64,000 nucleotides of DNA, taken from positions 186,001-250,000 of IMG/VR virus record IMGVR_UViG_3300035698_035310. One strand, written 5' to 3'. Below the pieces are notes generated by a model. The model searched no databases and had not been told where the DNA came from. It saw only the letters and a program-made list of their open reading frames with translations. Below, piece after piece: positions 17,977 to 35,895 of this stretch; position 1 is the stretch's first letter, and every line of letters starts with the position of its first letter. The position numbers and the translations under genes are program-made.

Positions 17977-18034
17977 TATAGATTGGCTTAAAACAGCCAT
18001 TCCAATCACATCTACCGTGGGGGGAGACAGTTAT
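17977..18034 (+). repeat. direct repeat DR2
   Basis: ttatagattggcttaaaacagccattccaatc...ccgtgggggagacagttat. Confidence 0.8.
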
Positions 18035-18776
18035 TTTTATTACCCTTTGACATATTGTCTTTAGCCCATAATGGCTGAAGATTTGTGTAATGCATCGCTT
18101 TATGCTGTTCATTTATATCCGATAAATCAAATGATGATAATGGAATAATATGATCTATATGCCAACCATCAGTAGCCCAGTTATCCCAAGACATCCCCAC
18201 CGTAAATTGATTCTCTAAATGTTCCTTTAATGTAGCAATGTCCGTTCCAATCAATTTTAACGCAGATTTAGTCTTCTTAACCCCGCTATTACGTAAATAC
18301 TTACCTAACGCATTTCTAAGATTAATACGCAGTTTAAAAAGTGGATCATTAGCATAGCGTTCCCTTCGAAGTTTATTCCGTATATCCCTTGTTTTACTAG
18401 CATATTTTTTGTCCCATCCAGACTTCAATTGTTTAAACTTTGAAGTTTTTGCGTAAGGAACCCTCCATATATCCCATGAACACTGCTTACAATACGTTTT
18501 TTTATCATAATGACACTTGCCAGAAAAATCACTCGGAAAACTATCTAAATCTTTTATAGTATCACATTTACGACATTTTCTCTTTCCTTCGCTTTGTAGT
18601 ATATGTAACTCTGATACATACTTTTTTTCTTCCATCAACTTTTCAGGGTCTTTGCTATTCTTTATACTTACACACTGCTTGCAACTTCCCCTTAAATATG
18701 AAGGATGATCCCGTATACCTGCTGATGCATAACTGTCTAATGATAATTCCCGATTGCATGTTTTACATTTTTTCAT
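18012..18776 (-). CDS. HNH homing-type endonuclease with N-terminal CxxC modules
   Basis: KKCKTC, RKCRKC; WHIDHIIPLSSFDL...HYTNLQPLWAKDNMSKGN; ATG directly after a TTGACA promoter. Confidence 0.85.
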   Translation of the reverse strand: MKKCKTCNRELSLDSYASAGIRDHPSYLRGSCKQCVSIKNSKDPEKLMEEKKYVSELHILQSEGKRKCRKCDTIKDLDSFPSDFSGKCHYDKKTYCKQCSWDIWRVPYAKTSKFKQLKSGWDKKYASKTRDIRNKLRRERYANDPLFKLRINLRNALGKYLRNSGVKKTKSALKLIGTDIATLKEHLENQFTVGMSWDNWATDGWHIDHIIPLSSFDLSDINEQHKAMHYTNLQPLWAKDNMSKGNKNNCLPPR

Positions 18777-18803
18777 TCGATTACAATAACACACTGGAGA
18801 CAG

Positions 18804-19151
18804 TTATGTCAATCGGTCTAGGGGCTGACAGTTATACAGCGATGGTATATTTTGTTCAGTGCGATTGCGTGATTTGTTATATGCAGTATCAAATTCTTTG
18901 ATTACTTGTTCTAATGACATATCACCAAAATTATACCATTCACCACGTACTTGTATATGCCTAAAATAAAAATGCATCCAACGCTCTGCCCACTTACGAG
19001 TATACGTGTTGTGGACTTTGGATATACTTAGTTTTTCTGGATTGCCTGTTTGTAATGTGCTTAATCTTTTAATAGATGATTTGGCTTCACCTATTTTATA
19101 TAAACTGGTGCTACCATTACGAATAAGATATACATCACCAAATGCGATCAT
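18804..19151 (-). CDS. GIY-YIG (T5orf172-like) endonuclease domain protein
   Basis: VYLI...YKIGEA...RLSTLQTGNP...E..MH..F...VRGEWY. Confidence 0.85.
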   Translation of the reverse strand: MIAFGDVYLIRNGSTSLYKIGEAKSSIKRLSTLQTGNPEKLSISKVHNTYTRKWAERWMHFYFRHIQVRGEWYNFGDMSLEQVIKEFDTAYNKSRNRTEQNIPSLYNCQPLDRLT

Positions 19152-19199
19152 TGGATATTCCTTCCAATCAATGTAGATACAGTATAACAGTTATTCAAA

Positions 19200-20510
19200 T
19201 TATGTCAATTGGTTTAGGGATAAATCAACTATTCTATTAACCATATTTTGTATATCAGAATCTATTACATGAAACAAATACTCGTTTTCTAAATCTACAT
19301 CTTTAGTTTTTTTAAGTAAGCCATCGTCAAAGGCTGATTGATTGCGCATAGATTTATAACCACCAACACGCTCACGCATGTCATCAATCAACCTAGTGGT
19401 ATCAAGGATACCATCTTCATAATATAGATTGATACCAAGATTATTCAAATATGTGTATATATCAACATCGATTGTTAACAAATCCATATAACCATCATAC
19501 TTACGCCAATGATAGTTAAGTTGACGGTTGAAGTATAAATCATACTTACCGCTATCAATATCATTATACACTTGTAATAAATCTTTATGTAAATCATTTA
19601 AATTACACGACGTTATTCTTTCAAATATATCTTTATCAAATGTATTATCATCCATATTATGCAATGGTGACATTTTATGATATATGGTGCATATAACATT
19701 ACCAGTACTACCATCAACAGATATATTATTGACATTGAAAAGAGGTGCACAATGTCTGTAATATGTCCGCAAATAAACAGTTATTTTATTGTCTTTGATT
19801 TCTATTCTAAAAAATGATGAAATTTTAAATAATTTACATAAATCATTATATATACATAGCATATCAGCCGACATATTGGTGAACAAAGCATTAGTAAGAT
19901 CAATGTCACACTTACGGATATAATTCCAAATGATTTGATTGTTATCTGATGTTAAATCATACACGGCTGTATATTTTTTATCAGTCATAATAAAAATAGA
20001 TGAATATAACCCATCGTTGTGGTTTAGGATGTTTTGTACATTTTTCATTATAGTAATAATTTTATTTGATACAATATCGCGTGCTTGATGTAATAATTTA
20101 TTATGTTTTCTAAATAGATCGCGTATACGAATGTATTCTATTTCTTCATTGGTTTTTTCTTTATAAGTCCACTTTCCTGTAATTTTATGTTTATGTAATG
20201 ATTTTTCCATGGCTATTCGTTCAGGTATGGATGCATTTAAAACTTTTTTAACAGCAATAGACAGCAATCCTGCATTAGACACATGAAACCATTCCTTTAC
20301 TTTGATATCTTCGATGTGAAAATGAGAAAGTTGTGACTGTATTGCTTTTTCTGTTATTAGTGCATCTTTTTCTGATCCAGTATATATTACTTTAAATGTG
20401 TCACCGGGACGATAATGATTATTACTTCTACTTTCTGGATTTGTGGTGATACCTGGAGTGACTTGTATTCCATTAGGATATTTTGTTTCATTGATGTATA
20501 CGTAATGCAT
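19200..20510 (-). CDS. protein with N-terminal GIY-YIG/T5orf172-like domain
   Basis: YVYI...PGITTNPESR...EKAIQ..L....VKEWF; C-terminal ~330 aa unassigned. Confidence 0.6.
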   Translation of the reverse strand: MHYVYINETKYPNGIQVTPGITTNPESRSNNHYRPGDTFKVIYTGSEKDALITEKAIQSQLSHFHIEDIKVKEWFHVSNAGLLSIAVKKVLNASIPERIAMEKSLHKHKITGKWTYKEKTNEEIEYIRIRDLFRKHNKLLHQARDIVSNKIITIMKNVQNILNHNDGLYSSIFIMTDKKYTAVYDLTSDNNQIIWNYIRKCDIDLTNALFTNMSADMLCIYNDLCKLFKISSFFRIEIKDNKITVYLRTYYRHCAPLFNVNNISVDGSTGNVICTIYHKMSPLHNMDDNTFDKDIFERITSCNLNDLHKDLLQVYNDIDSGKYDLYFNRQLNYHWRKYDGYMDLLTIDVDIYTYLNNLGINLYYEDGILDTTRLIDDMRERVGGYKSMRNQSAFDDGLLKKTKDVDLENEYLFHVIDSDIQNMVNRIVDLSLNQLT

Positions 20511-20991
20511 GCTATAACCCTTTTATTATTGTTGCAGTCTACAGTATAACACTTATTCAACCAGTGTCAAGTCAGGTTTGGGGGCGAAGTGTAGGGGAGG
20601 GTGGAGATCGTGAGACAGTTATTTGGATGACGTTTCTTTTGTCATCGGATATTCATGCGATAAATCAATAATTGATCCAGTATCGCCATCAGCCGTTATA
20701 TAGGTTATCATATAAACTTCTTCATTAGGTCTATGAACAACATCATATGGAATAATATCATCTACCGTGACAAATTGACGATCTTCACCAGTACCAACCA
20801 ATATCCTATCACCAGGTTTATATGGTGTATTAAATAACGATTCCATTAATCCATCAAAAAAATCATTCAACTCATTAGTTGACATATCCAGTAAACATTC
20901 ATTGCCATCTTCCATGGTGCATTCCTTTCATTGGTTTAATTACAGTATAACACCTTGGGACAATTATGTCAACGACCCACCAAATAAAAGA

Positions 20992-21101
20992 ATAAATACT
21001 ATTATAATAATGAATGTGTCGGGTTGTTTGCGCAACCCACGAAGTTCGAAGGATCGAAACTTCTAACACATTCAATAACTATTTATAGAAGGAATATCAC
21101 A
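20992..21101 (+). ncRNA. structured 5' leader (three-way junction) of the endonuclease gene
   Basis: P1 GAATGTGT 21012-19/ACACATTC 21066-73; P2 GGGTTG/CAACCC; P3 GAAGTTCGA/TCGAAACTTC; bounded by ATAAATA and TATTTATA. Confidence 0.6.
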
Positions 21102-22124
21102 ATGACTAATGCACTCACAACTGAAGATTTCATTCAACGTTCTATAGAAGCGCATAAGCCTTATCACGAACATTATGATTATAGCAAAGCGATCTATATC
21201 AAAACAACTAAAAAAATAACAATTACATGTAAGTTTCATGGCGACTTCGAAGTTATTGCTGCTACCCATCTAGGTGGTGCACATTGCAATAAGTGTAATA
21301 AAATGATTAATTCCATAATAAAAGAAGAAAATATTAGATTGCAAAAAATCGCTAACAATTATGAAATACAAGAAAAAGCAAAGGATTTCTACAACCGTGT
21401 TGATGAACGATTTGGTAGATTCAATTATAGTAAGAGTGTATTTGAAAATATGTCAACACCCATTATAATAAAATGCACTTGGCATGGCGAATTTGAACAA
21501 ACACCAAGTGTTCATTTAAGCCACCTTACAGGCTGTCCTGAGTGTAATCAGTTAGTTGCCAAGTGGCGTAACGATAGAACTACCCCAGCGTTCATTAAAA
21601 AGGCGAGAAAGGTGCATGGATGGCTATATGAATATGATAAAGTAGAATTTATTGATAATAAAACACCCATTACTATCATTTGCCCAGACCATGGTGTATT
21701 CAACCAAACACCATCGAATCACTTAAGGGGTGGAGGATGCCAAAAATGTGGCGGAAGGTTTGGGGCGAAAGAAACTGAATGGATAGAATATATGGAAGAA
21801 CGTATAGGTTATTCACTGGTCACCGACCACACTACCTTAAAGATGGCTGATGGCAAAGTATACTTCCCTGATGCATATGATCCTGACACTAAAACAGTAT
21901 ATGAATTCGATGGTGATTACTACCATGGCAATCCAAATAGATATGCACCTGATCAAACGAACTATACATCAAAGAAAACCATGGGTGAGCTATATGAAGC
22001 CACTCTCAAGAAAAAATCGGATTTAGAAACCAATGGCTATACTGTTTTGTCCATATGGGAAAGCGAATGGGATGCATTCAAGACGACTTTACCTGATAGA
22101 TTTCCTAATATCAAAGCAGCATAA
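21102..22124 (+). CDS. free-standing endonuclease: DUF723-like zinc-finger repeats plus a Vsr/PD-(D/E)xK-like catalytic domain
   Basis: Three YDYSK..Y.....I.I.C..HG.F.Q.P..HL.G..C..C repeats; PDAYD...YEFDGDYYHGNP...WE..W; GAAGGA RBS. Confidence 0.85.
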   Translation: MTNALTTEDFIQRSIEAHKPYHEHYDYSKAIYIKTTKKITITCKFHGDFEVIAATHLGGAHCNKCNKMINSIIKEENIRLQKIANNYEIQEKAKDFYNRVDERFGRFNYSKSVFENMSTPIIIKCTWHGEFEQTPSVHLSHLTGCPECNQLVAKWRNDRTTPAFIKKARKVHGWLYEYDKVEFIDNKTPITIICPDHGVFNQTPSNHLRGGGCQKCGGRFGAKETEWIEYMEERIGYSLVTDHTTLKMADGKVYFPDAYDPDTKTVYEFDGDYYHGNPNRYAPDQTNYTSKKTMGELYEATLKKKSDLETNGYTVLSIWESEWDAFKTTLPDRFPNIKAA

Positions 22125-22298: not shown

Positions 22299-22735
22299 TC
22301 ACAGTGTGACAGAATAAGTGCGCCAACTTTCATCACAGTGTGAATGAAACTGGAAAAATCATCACAGTGTGTGCATTTTGGAACACGTGTTTTGCTCACA
22401 GTGTGATATTTACCCTCACAGTGTGATTTTTTATCCTCACAGTGTGATATTTGGAACGCTTATCTGCTCACAGTGTGATATTTACCCTCACAGTGTGATT
22501 TTTTATCCTCACAGTGTGATATTTACCCTCACAGTGTGATATTTACCCTCACAGTGTGATTTTTTATCCTCACAGTGTGATATTTGGAACGCTTATCTGC
22601 TCACAGTGTGATTTTTTATCCTCACAGTGTGATATTTACCCTCACAGTGTGATTTTTTATCCTCACAGTGTGATATTTACCCTCACAGTGTGATTTTTTA
22701 TCCTCACAGTGTGATATTTGGAACACACACTGTGA
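22299..22735. repeat. array of 18 direct copies plus 1 inverted copy of the palindromic core TCACAGTGTG(A); candidate origin/iteron or protein-nucleation site
   Basis: Core starts at 22299, 22333, 22362, 22396, 22416, 22437, 22468, 22488, 22509, 22529, 22549, 22570, 22601, 22622, 22642, 22663, 22683, 22704; from 22396 onward spacings are 20/21/31 bp; located at the strand switch. Confidence 0.9.
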
Positions 22736-22857: not shown

Positions 22858-22945
22858 GAACACTTATAGAACAAAGGTAGTTTTGAATTTTCCATAACAG
22901 ATGTTATGCGATTCTAACGGGGTAAACAGTGAACATAGGTGGAAC
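22858..22945 (+). promoter_or_regulatory. two alphaproteobacterial LexA-type boxes (GAAC-N7-GAAC)
   Basis: GAAC-ACTTATA-GAAC 22858-72; GAAC-ATAGGTG-GAAC 22931-45. Confidence 0.5.
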
Positions 22946-23031
22946 ATTTGTATCATACATAGTCCATATTGGTTTGATATGCATTATATATAATACATTG
23001 TCATAAGTGTTATACTGTGATATAATGTATC

Positions 23032-24891
23032 ATGGGATTAATACTGAATAGAATAGCGTATAGCAAAAATAATTGTTATAGGATAAATTACACATATAAT
23101 GGAGATATGGTGTCCAATGATGGATGGGTTGAGATGTCTTTATTTACGTTTGGCAGGCAAGTTGAACACAATTGGATAACTATGGATATGTTATTGGATA
23201 TGATCAACATTGATTATGAAGTATCTATAAGTGTGGCACAGTTATGAGAGATTTAACGGGTGAGATATTAAAAAGCATAGAGGAATTGATTAATACTACA
23301 TTACCGGATACACCGGAACGCAAAAGGGTTTCTGCACTTGGTGATGAAATACTTGATACATTAAGAATTCATCATGATATTGTAACGACGGTATATATAG
23401 TGAAGACGTTATATATAAAGAAAGATAATGGTAAGTATATTGTCATCAATAAAATGTTTAATGGTACAATATGTATATATAAGTATGACACTATTCTTGA
23501 CATAGTTAAGTTTGGTAAATTTGGATTAGATGAACTCATGAAAATGGATAACACATATGAAGATTCGGTTGTGGCACAGTTATGAGACTACTTAATGAAG
23601 ATCAATTGGAAGAACTTATGGATGCGATGATCAGGGATATGGTGGAGTATGAACTTACGGGTATTGAGGTATTGTTTTGGATGATAGAAGAAATACCACA
23701 ACTTGAAGCTATGGTATATATACGCAATGAATGAAGATGATCGATGGATGATACAGAAGACGATGATACGGAAGGTTCCATTACCGGTTAAGCGTCGTGT
23801 TATGCCGACAGTTATTGCGAATAACGTAGTTGGTGTATCACCGATGGCTCCACCGGTTAAGTCTATTCATACGATGCGGTTTGAGGATTACAGTGATTTA
23901 GAGATGGAAGAGGTTTTATACCGGTTGATTTTTGGCGGGACGGGACATTATTATCAGGTATGGTTATTCAATGAAGTTATTGATAATGATATGATGGTTA
24001 ACAGGGATGTATCAATTGGCAACGTTTGATGTTAGTAAGTTTAATAAGTTTAGGGTGCCAGTTGATAACCATAAAGGTATGTTACATTCTGGTATAAATG
24101 TGTATACGAACCCGTATATAAGATTGTTATCATCGCGCAATGCGCCGATTGAAGATTTAATAATAGTGATATTGAGAAATTCTATTGGTGTTGGTCAAGA
24201 AGCATTATTTAAACATATAAATCCACCGGTATTGGATAGCCATGTTACTATAGAACCCATAGGTGTTGATGAATAGGTCTTATGGGTTTCATAGGTCTTG
24301 AGCCATAGGTTTCATAGCATAGGTGCTATGGGTTTCATAGCATAGGTGCTATGGGTTTCATAGGAATAAAGCTATAGGAGTTATTGATGGCAATAAATGA
24401 TAGCAAATTACGCGGGGTGATTAAGTATACTATAGTTACGGATGATGGAGGGAAACCGATGACAAAGTTATTAGAAACTACTTGGGGAGAAGCCAAACGT
24501 GCATTAATGGAGGATCGTCGTTACACTGTCACTTATAAAGGATTTTCACATGTTGGTGACACTTATATAGATGCAATGTTACAATTAGTTCGATGGCGCA
24601 GTTTGGCGCGTGATGCTACTAATATGCATGAAGAACTGTTTGATATATTGAGTTCATATATAATTGAACGGGATGTATCGATAAGTGTCTTATAGATTAT
24701 TGATGATATTATTAGAATATCGTGCAGAGTTAGTATATCCATATACATATGAAGTATTAACACAAAGTAATACATCATATGTCCGTGTGACTAAAAAGCA
24801 GGAAGTTTTATGTGATATAATTGCGTCGCAGGAAAATTTATCGAAAATTATTTTTATAAATTGCGGAGAAATTTTAATTTCGGAGATTTGA
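23032..24891 (+). CDS. cluster of small AT-rich hypothetical genes with related C-termini (SISVAQL, SVVAQL, DVSIGNV, DVSISVL)
   Basis: ORFs 23032, 23244, 23703, 24007, 24384 and 24685; tails resemble those at 786-1530. Confidence 0.5.
24256..24380. repeat. degenerate tandem repeat of CATAGGTGCTATGGGTTTCATAG
   Basis: Exact ATAGGTGCTAT cores at 24319 and 24342 (23-bp period) with degenerate copies on both sides. Confidence 0.8.
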
Positions 24892-24897
24892 AAATCC

Positions 24898-24980
24898 GTT
24901 CTTGTTTTGTTCTGAATTTTTATTTGTTCTTGTTTTGTTCACGATCTGTTCTATGTTCTACTTTTGTTCTTGTTTTGTTC
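24898..24980. promoter_or_regulatory. array of five GTTC-N7-GTTC (alpha-LexA-type) boxes
   Basis: GTTC at 24898/24909, 24926/24937/24948 and 24955/24966/24977 (11-bp periodicity). Confidence 0.6.
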
Positions 24981-25134
24981 TAATTTCCTATTTTTCCTTT
25001 TTTCAAATATGACTGTTTCCTCCTTGACCCCAAGATACCAGATTTTGACCGTCCTGTCAAGTCTTTTCTTTAGTCCAGTTAGTTGATAGTTGGCACACTT
25101 ATTGCTGTCGCATGAATCGCGCCAAAATAAGTGC

Positions 25135-25253
25135 TTGACAAATTTTTTACTTGGGGGTATAGTTAAGATAGGGAGGGATGAGTGAAATTTAAAATCCAAA
25201 AAAAACTCATCCCTCCCTACGGTCAGTTTAGCACGTATTGAAAAGATGGTCAA
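25135..25253. promoter_or_regulatory. pair of face-to-face sigma70-type promoters, each initiating at AGGGAGGGATGAG
   Basis: Plus: TTGACA 25135, TATAGT 25158, motif 25169-82. Minus: TTGACC 25253-48, TAAACT 25230-25, motif 25219-06. Both have 17-bp spacers. Confidence 0.75.
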
Positions 25254-25528: not shown

Positions 25529-25768
25529 ATGTCTAAAGCTATTATATCGCATCGCGCCATTTCTGATATGTGTATTGGCATATTGAAGAATCAATCCAAG
25601 ACGGCATTTACATTGGGCGAGTTCCAACAAGTGGCGGTTCCTATTATACAGACGGTGTTCCCTAACAACAACACTGTAAAGGATACGACACGTTATTCTT
25701 TACAGCAGTTACGCGACGCTGGTGTTGTTCGGTTTGTTGACGACGCTGGTATCTACAAAATTCTTTAA
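25529..25768 (+). CDS. stand-alone DpnI C-terminal-like winged-helix domain
   Basis: FTLGEF...VFPNNNTVKDTTRYSLQQLRDAGVVRFV...G.YK resembles the DpnI wH pattern FTL...F.KNNHIKEKIRQQLQILRD..IEF..G.Y. Confidence 0.65.
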   Translation: MSKAIISHRAISDMCIGILKNQSKTAFTLGEFQQVAVPIIQTVFPNNNTVKDTTRYSLQQLRDAGVVRFVDDAGIYKIL

Positions 25769-27967: not shown

Positions 27968-28501
27968 ATGAGTGATGATACGATAGACTTTCCGGGAACT
28001 ACGTCTAAAGCTCCGTCGAATGATCATGGTCCAATTATTGATTATAATACATTGATTCGTGCTGCTCATTTGAATGTTGTTAAAGACGCGATTCAAATCG
28101 TTTCGGATACTGGTCCTGCTGAATTCTTTAATATCAATATTACTTATGATTTGATGCACCCTGATTCGGTATCTGAAGAATGGTTGTGGAAGAAATATCC
28201 TGAGAAGATTACCATTATACTTAACAACCAATATGAAAACTTACACGTTGAGGACACTGGCTTTCGTGTCACCTTACATTTCGGTGGTTCTCCGGTTGCG
28301 TTGTTTGTTCCGTTTGATTCTATACTCAGTTATGTTGATATGGTTACGCGGGTTATGTTTTCGTTTGAAGACCCACATGCTAATGAACCAGTTGACAATC
28401 CATTTGAATCGGTTGATACGCCAGATATTAAATTGGTTCCTGATGCTGGCGCGGAAGTTATATCGTTGGACGCATTTAGGGATAAGAATAAAAAGGATTG
28501 A
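27968..28501 (+). CDS. sspB: alphaproteobacterial-type ClpXP adaptor SspB
   Basis: IDY..L...A...VV; KKYPEKITIILNNQY..L.V...GFRVTLHFGG....L.VPFDSI...VD; C-terminal ClpX-binding-type AEVISLDAFR. Confidence 0.85.
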   Translation: MSDDTIDFPGTTSKAPSNDHGPIIDYNTLIRAAHLNVVKDAIQIVSDTGPAEFFNINITYDLMHPDSVSEEWLWKKYPEKITIILNNQYENLHVEDTGFRVTLHFGGSPVALFVPFDSILSYVDMVTRVMFSFEDPHANEPVDNPFESVDTPDIKLVPDAGAEVISLDAFRDKNKKD

Positions 28502-35821: not shown

Positions 35822-35895
35822 GGGGGCATAGCTCAGTGGTAGAGCAGTGGGTTCTAAACCCTTTGTCGGGAGTTCGACTCTCCCTGCCCTCGCCA
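35822..35895 (+). tRNA. tRNA with CUA anticodon (amber suppressor), Trp-like body
   Basis: Acceptor GGGGGCA/TGCCCTC, D arm GCTC/GAGC, anticodon loop TT-CTA-AA, T arm GGGAG-TTCGACT-CTCCC, G73 and encoded CCA; own TTGACA promoter at 35785. Confidence 0.92.

Follow-up and report, generated by a model that had tools for sequence, protein, structure and literature searches.

The window analysed here comprises 64,000 bp, bases 186001-250000 of an IMG/VR virus record (G000; 359,044 bp, 36% GC) recovered from a salt-lake metagenome. It contains a short non-coding array of GTTC tetramers, which start on the plus strand at 24898, 24909, 24926, 24937, 24948, 24955, 24966 and 24977. Exact GTTC-N7-GTTC pairs (boxes) begin at 24898, 24926, 24937, 24955 and 24966, and the five overlap because GTTCs are shared between pairs; at most three or four of the 15 bp sites can be occupied simultaneously. 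The 15-mer GTTCTTGTTTTGTTC occurs three times in the array. These positions confirm the eight tetramers and five exact pairs in 83 bp that a preliminary description of the sequence had reported, as well as its two additional boxes at 22858 and 22931, both of which are on the minus strand. The only other box of the array type in the G000 record is GTTCACGTTTTGTTC, a perfect match to the class consensus described below. The array and the features that surround it are listed in Table 1.

Table 1. Features at and around the GTTC array. Positions refer to the window unless marked G000.
Feature	Position	Strand	Remarks
Endonuclease VII/Lar-like gene	18012-18794	-	homing-endonuclease-like
T5orf172 gene	19200-20510	-	homing-endonuclease-like
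HNH gene	21024-22124	+	homing-endonuclease-like
Palindrome array, TCACAGTGTGA	22299-22714		18 copies, mostly 20-21 bp apart
Isolated box GTTCTATAAGTGTTC	22858-22872	-	126 bp upstream of the -35 of promoter 22998-23026
Isolated box GTTCCACCTATGTTC	22931-22945	-	53 bp upstream of the -35 of promoter 22998-23026
Small ORFs with common C-terminal motif	23032-24695	+	
ATAGGTGCTATGGGTTTCATAGC-like 23 bp repeat	24257-24363		four copies, between two small ORFs
Last small ORF of the upstream gene cluster	24685-24891	+	68 aa
Whole GTTC cluster	24898-24980	+	eight GTTC, five overlapping GTTC-N7-GTTC boxes; layout [2]-17-[3]-7-[3]; non-coding
Box 1, GTTCTTGTTTTGTTC	24898-24912	+	7 bp past the stop codon of ORF 24685-24891
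Boxes 2 and 3, GTTCTTGTTTTGTTC and GTTCACGATCTGTTC	24926-24951	+	three phased GTTC, the middle one common to both boxes
Boxes 4 and 5, GTTCTACTTTTGTTC and GTTCTTGTTTTGTTC	24955-24980	+	three phased GTTC, 7 bp offset from the preceding triplet
Promoter-like TTGACA-17-TATCTT	25032-25060	-	upstream TG; consensus match only
Sigma-70-type promoter TTGACA-17-TATAGT	25135-25163	+	first of 17 stereotyped promoter modules
Two facing copies of conserved leader AGGGAGGGATGAGT	25170-25218		belong to + promoter 25135 and - promoter 25253-25225
Winged-helix protein gene	25529-25768	+	79 aa; DpnI_C domain (Pfam score 32.8 bits, cut-off 23); no second such gene in G000
Promoter modules in the window	25135-25253 (two, facing), 36630, 41489, 50058, 53124, 54302		more up to G000 263 kb
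CUA-anticodon tRNA gene	35822-35895		
CUA-anticodon tRNA gene	G000 28369-28446		
Class-consensus box GTTCACGTTTTGTTC	G000 257954, within 257949-257971 (window ~71950)		outside the window; immediately follows an intrinsic terminator; promoter module ~20 bp away

The array follows a cluster of plus-strand genes, and no intrinsic terminator is found between the last ORF of that cluster and the array. Its end is 155 bp from the -35 hexamer at 25135, which is the nearest on the plus strand, and the nearest -35 hexamer on the minus strand is 75 bp away. No promoter-like site is present inside 24898-24980, and the array neither overlaps nor abuts a promoter that it might control, as a LexA operator would. 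The minus-strand promoter-like site at 25032-25060, if active, would send transcripts leftward through the array. The 17 near-identical promoter modules are distributed over G000 211-263 kb on both strands and have the form TTGACT-N17-(TG)TATTAT-N6-AGGGAGGGATGAG-T7-GGA. Some of them aim into terminators, such that the transcripts would be only ~70 nt. Conservation of the leader is suggestive of phage-specific control acting when transcription starts or immediately afterwards; the leader hairpin gave only a sub-threshold chance match in Rfam. The winged-helix gene, 550 bp downstream of the array, codes for no LexA or CI-type domain.

Other repeats and genes occur to the left of the array. The TCACAGTGTGA palindromes are absent elsewhere in the 359-kb record, sit next to the point where coding strand and GC-skew sign change, and are candidates for an origin or for an operator array of another protein. 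The small ORFs just upstream of the GTTC array end in related motifs (YEVSISVAQL, YEDSVVAQL, RDVSIGNV, RDVSISVL), and look like a paralogous family. The strand switch at 18012-22124 is populated by the three homing-endonuclease-like genes. A flanking 436-aa protein with a T5orf172 domain, taken to be homing-endonuclease-like, has no homologue, and for another flanking protein no homologue exceeds 55% identity. Comparisons by megablast, and by blastn with cultured phages, found no close relatives in which the orthologous region could be compared. The array is identical in contigs from four other salt-lake runs and, with no differences among these contigs, there is no signal of constraint on it.

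The clustering of GTTC is far beyond chance. The preliminary description had proposed counting the box against shuffled sequence; the window contains seven GTTC-N7-GTTC against 1.39 expected, and none of 100 dinucleotide shuffles reaches seven. The array is the densest plus-strand GTTC cluster of the whole 359-kb record, and half of the record's 14 N7 pairs fall within 2.2 kb. Sixty genomes simulated with a first-order Markov model gave at most six GTTC per 83 bp, compared to the eight observed, and at most two N7 pairs per 100 bp, compared to five. The same description had raised a plain 11 bp tandem duplication as an alternative, and this does not hold: TRF finds a period of 11 with 65% matches, 15% indels and a score of 41, and invariant cores are combined with variable spacers and unrelated flanks. 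A broader version, in which the array has no specific partner and is simply a T-rich, intrinsically bent or duplicated spacer, draws on the base composition of the plus strand (63% T, with T-tracts about one helical turn apart) and on the occurrence of 11 bp TGTTC minisatellites in many phyla. We consider it very improbable, given that GTTC is kept in all eight units despite the differing spacers, that identical 15-mers sit in unrelated flanks, and that both the array unit and the [3]-7-[3] layout recur in unrelated phages. Readings at the RNA level, as a Rho rut site or as A-rich repeats bound by Hfq, were rejected; the plus strand has more G than C, and other arrays do not preserve the A-rich pattern.

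The direct repeat GTTC-N7-GTTC is the LexA box of Alphaproteobacteria, among them Caulobacter, Rhodobacter and Sinorhizobium (PMC8565304, PMC9578287), and a validated Caulobacter box, GTTCttgttatGTTC, is one base away from the main G000 box (bioRxiv 10.1101/2025.01.26.634973). Genuine operators were sampled from 301 Pseudomonadota genomes by taking the regions upstream of 40 lexA and 40 recA genes; all 40 lexA regions belong to the lower-scoring LexA type, and the recA genes are from genomes with that LexA type or with the LysRS type. The box is present in 38 of the 40 lexA upstream regions, located 30-215 bp upstream and mostly 45-100 bp before the gene, and in 18 of the 40 recA regions. Three phased GTTC, forming two overlapping boxes, are seen in five of the 40 lexA regions.

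Position weight matrices were built over the nine non-core positions from 44 lexA-type and 18 recA operators of the alphaproteobacterial type. Genuine operators score 2.9 with the lexA matrix and 3.0 with the recA matrix (leave-one-out), and the G000 array boxes range from 1.0 to 7.0 and from 0.6 to 6.5, respectively, box 1 scoring 4.2 and 4.5. The outlying G000 boxes score 1.6 to 7.6 with the lexA matrix; the highest of these, at 22858, gives 7.6 with this matrix but -2.0 with the recA set, and the box at G000 257954 gives 5.7 with the recA matrix. Boxes of other phage contigs score 2.3 and 2.85 (the latter for 133 viral boxes), composition-matched random spacers -4.0 and -5.1, and T-rich random spacers 0.8 and 0.3, for the lexA and recA matrices in turn. 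The phage boxes thus score as genuine lexA and recA operators do, far above the composition nulls, and moderately above the T-rich null. Because only non-core positions are scored, the likeness extends beyond GTTC itself, and part of the score reflects T-richness.

The five array boxes, together with those at 22858, 22931 and G000 257954, share with the alphaproteobacterial SOS box the core, the 7 bp spacing and the direct-repeat orientation, along with a T-rich spacer and a T before the second GTTC, and the arrangement in pairs and in three phased GTTC is also that of lexA promoters. They differ in that eight GTTC are packed into 83 bp, whereas a cellular promoter has one or two boxes, and in that the array is off the promoter, has a tighter class spacer consensus, and belongs to a phage whose alphaproteobacterial host is putative. 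The class spacer has G at position 3 and T at position 6, in agreement with the recA operators and not with the lexA operators, which unlike the phage class have G at spacer position 6. The preliminary description had noted no lexA gene in the window, and this extends to the whole 359-kb record, in which neither a LexA DNA-binding domain nor an S24 peptidase is present anywhere. Its view that these are LexA boxes, acting by titration or by coupling the promoters at 25.1-25.3 kb to DNA damage, fares unevenly: the GTTC cores, the fit of the non-core positions and the alphaproteobacterial kin of the phage speak for LexA sites, and the lack of promoter overlap and the absence of arrays from cultured relatives speak against.

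An alphaproteobacterial host appears likely from the relationships of several G000 proteins. Among cultured phages, the DNA polymerase is closest to those of two jumbo phages, Phosso of Sinorhizobium (45%) and Atu_ph07 of Agrobacterium (43%), the helicase to Brevundimonas and Dinoroseobacter phages, and rIIA to Roseobacter phages, at identities of 29-51% overall and with a record GC content of 36%. Homologues of the class-I LysRS are found almost only in those sampled genomes that have the box-regulated, lower-scoring LexA type (39 of 40 such genomes). Shine-Dalgarno ORFs and sigma-70-like promoters indicate that the host is not one of the Bacteroidota. We also considered the TctA transporter as a host marker and discarded it, the plasmid matches being at or below 35% identity and a strong match being present in none of the 301 Pseudomonadota genomes.

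Similar clusters appear, from their sequences, in many unrelated marine phages, and are present on dozens of unrelated IMG/VR contigs. When IMG/VR is scanned for the main G000 box accompanied by another pair, 27 loci of 31-48% GC with 4 to 16 GTTC each are recovered. The consensus TTTTGTTC[A/T][C/T]G is common to G000 and many unrelated IMG/VR phage contigs, and the G000 units conform to the unit profile GTTC-[T/A/C]-[C/T]-G-T-T-T-T. Requiring only three GTTC-N7-GTTC boxes gives at least 118 loci, and among the first 80 the array class accounts for about 15-20, the remainder being minisatellites or coding repeats. Runs of 11 bp-spaced GTTC in 18 arrays are mostly of length 2 (33 of 58) or length 3 (12 of 58) and are separated by variable gaps, and this construction from pairs points to a reader with two half-sites, i.e. 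a dimer. The [3]-7-[3] part of the G000 layout is also present in the unrelated contig L017. Terminases of some array contigs are closest to those of Pelagibacter, Roseobacter, Paracoccus and Sinorhizobium phages. For one array lineage, group A, the prophage relatives of the terminase are at 34-38% identity and are not informative; they reside in genomes mostly without a class-I LysRS match, and most without an alpha-type LexA match.

The distribution of the clusters has clear limits. None is present in 13 cultured phages of Alphaproteobacteria, all with background counts only, among which are the closest jumbo relatives, Atu_ph07 and Phosso, and relatives whose known hosts have LexA. Nor are there arrays in Methylophilales phage Venkman and phage C72C1, which have other or unknown hosts. 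In a scan of cellular genomes for arrays of at least five GTTC, most matches are coding repeats or perfect minisatellites and come from a wide range of phyla, a spread that makes this pattern too generic to use, and there are no alphaproteobacterial arrays among the 120 cellular matches listed. The one protein clearly common to G000 and a group of array contigs, DUF7227, was set aside as a partner, since 14 further homologues have no arrays nearby. Concentration of arrays near contig ends was also rejected, there being no clear enrichment when true contig coordinates are used.

In other contigs the arrays are mostly near packaging genes. A large terminase gene is within 4 kb of the array in 19 of the 27 contigs, and in about eight lineages the arrays are just upstream of terS/terL, often with C-runs and AGCAAGCT. 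A T5-like contig contains two arrays 3 to 4.6 kb upstream of its terminase gene; pre-early genes occupy the corresponding region of a related Vibrio phage, also T5-like. Short repeats also build P1 pac, lambda cosB and SPP1 pac. The array could accordingly be a cis site for DNA handling, either for recognition by the small terminase (pac or cosB-like) or as origin iterons, and in G000 it is only 2.2 kb from the 18-copy iteron array, near the sign change of coding strand and GC skew. Like parC/ParR, tubC/TubR, P1 pac and lambda cosB, it consists of short phased direct-repeat blocks, which in those systems are cooperatively bound by small proteins, and the arrays of other phage contigs adjoin terS. 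It differs from them in having no partner NTPase or terminase nearby in G000 and in being made of pairs with variable gaps rather than continuous iterons. Moreover, no terminase was found in the 359-kb record (no match to Terminase_6N, and none among 40 large ORFs scanned), and a position beside terminase genes or at a genome end, as for pac or cosB, is seen in many other array contigs and not in G000. The small terminase subunits beside the arrays are from unrelated families, for which a common recognition sequence is unexpected; arrays are not clearly enriched at contig ends; and, at the level of contigs, those from independent runs cross the array without breaks or pile-ups. A DNA-handling site in G000 is thus improbable. 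A partition centromere of the parC/ParR or tubC/TubR type finds no support, the downstream genes encoding proteins of 51-159 aa with one winged helix and with no NTPase family in a Pfam scan.

We note that at loci L011-L037 (for example L017 9770-9930, L026 6890-7080 and L023 711-1000) the clusters are accompanied by runs of 6-8 C and by AGCAAGCT-type palindromes upstream of terS. This composite of cluster, C-run and AGCAAGCT is common to unrelated lineages and may mark their cos or pac region.

Alternatively, a dimeric protein other than LexA, dedicated to direct repeats, could use the boxes as operators and control the neighbouring block of promoters; the resemblance of its sites to SOS boxes would then be due to coincidence or convergence. 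Candidates are the phage's own 79-aa winged-helix protein and a host response regulator of the OmpR/PhoB kind. Such regulators bind head-to-tail to repeats spaced by 11 bp, and the ArcA site (TGTTA-N6-TGTTA), the TorR site (CTGTTCATAT) and those of PhoB/PhoP have the same architecture, with several pairs per site, positions upstream of promoters, and half-sites TGTT(A/C) similar to those of the array; the array half-site, however, matches no published one exactly. A separate reader would also account for a tight consensus that departs from lexA operators at two spacer positions, for the placement of the array upstream of promoters, where activators usually bind, for the proximity of the winged-helix gene, and for cultured alphaproteobacterial phages having no arrays. 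Weighing against it, near the arrays there is no protein family common to the lineages, and none shared by G000 and the array contigs within 3 kb of them; relatives of the winged-helix protein (L009, L010) are without arrays, as are other occurrences of DUF7227; and GTTC-N7-GTTC is the site of no known regulator except alphaproteobacterial LexA (PMC8565304). Overall we regard a dedicated non-LexA reader as somewhat unlikely.

The array is best explained, as far as sequence comparison can indicate, as three to four simultaneously usable 15 bp direct-repeat operators of the alphaproteobacterial LexA type. We tentatively propose, as a scenario that is plausible without being probable, that host LexA dimers load on the array, which would serve as an SOS-dependent roadblock or insulator, or as a sink. 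LexA dimers would occupy three to four of the sites, and the bound protein would most likely form a roadblock or insulator between the two transcription units, or would block leftward transcription from the promoter-like site at 25060. This form of action is favoured by the lack of promoter overlap, the lack of a terminator after the upstream unit, and the 155 bp before the promoter modules; the same 155 bp to the -35 at 25135 makes classical operator occlusion of the 25.1-25.3 kb promoters unlikely. The roadblock would be lifted upon RecA-activated cleavage of LexA, for example when replication of the phage makes single-stranded DNA, and in a replicating genome the array sites would additionally, and secondarily, soak up LexA.

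G000 and the many unrelated phages with similar clusters may in this way read or soak up the host SOS switch. A distinctly unlikely extension is that LexA-operator clusters are a recurrent device of phages of Alphaproteobacteria, either as a LexA sponge that multiplies with the genome or as a LexA-gated barrier before late or packaging genes, by which SOS would be switched on or read without DNA damage and without a phage-encoded repressor or anti-repressor.

Phage switches wired to host LexA are familiar from CTXphi, coliphage 186 tum and Bacillus phage GIL01, in which the phage genome contains sites for host LexA and expression follows the SOS state, as might apply to the putative G000 sites. 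Those phages are temperate and time their induction with one or two LexA boxes over a promoter, whereas G000 has a promoter-less cluster in a jumbo phage that is probably virulent. A second parallel is datA, a titration site for DnaA, where good sites likewise cluster without a promoter to regulate and act by binding a protein away; it differs in that a full-text search of the literature found no description of a phage-borne LexA sink. Near-consensus boxes clustered away from promoters in a jumbo phage would, if bound by LexA, represent a different use of the SOS repressor, with the phage DNA as a sink or gated barrier, and clusters of this class also adjoin packaging genes in dozens of unrelated uncultivated phages. 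Should LexA not bind, a widespread and sharply defined phage motif, TTTTGTTCACG pairs, awaits its reader.

The genome as a whole is that of a jumbo phage with Atu_ph07 and Phosso as relatives. Its gene products include AspRS, class-I LysRS, an EF-G-like factor, ClpX, Lon, topoisomerase II, PRPP synthetase, the TctA transporter and a protein containing major-vault-protein domains. A contig of 570,750 bp has exact copies of G000 proteins, and the phage genome is therefore probably larger than the IMG/VR 'provirus' record, which would be a mis-trimmed piece of it. There are 32 tRNA genes in total, and the two with CUA anticodons (Table 1) are amber suppressors, designated tRNA-Pyl by ARAGORN. TAG is the rarest stop codon and ends 34 of 301 long open frames.
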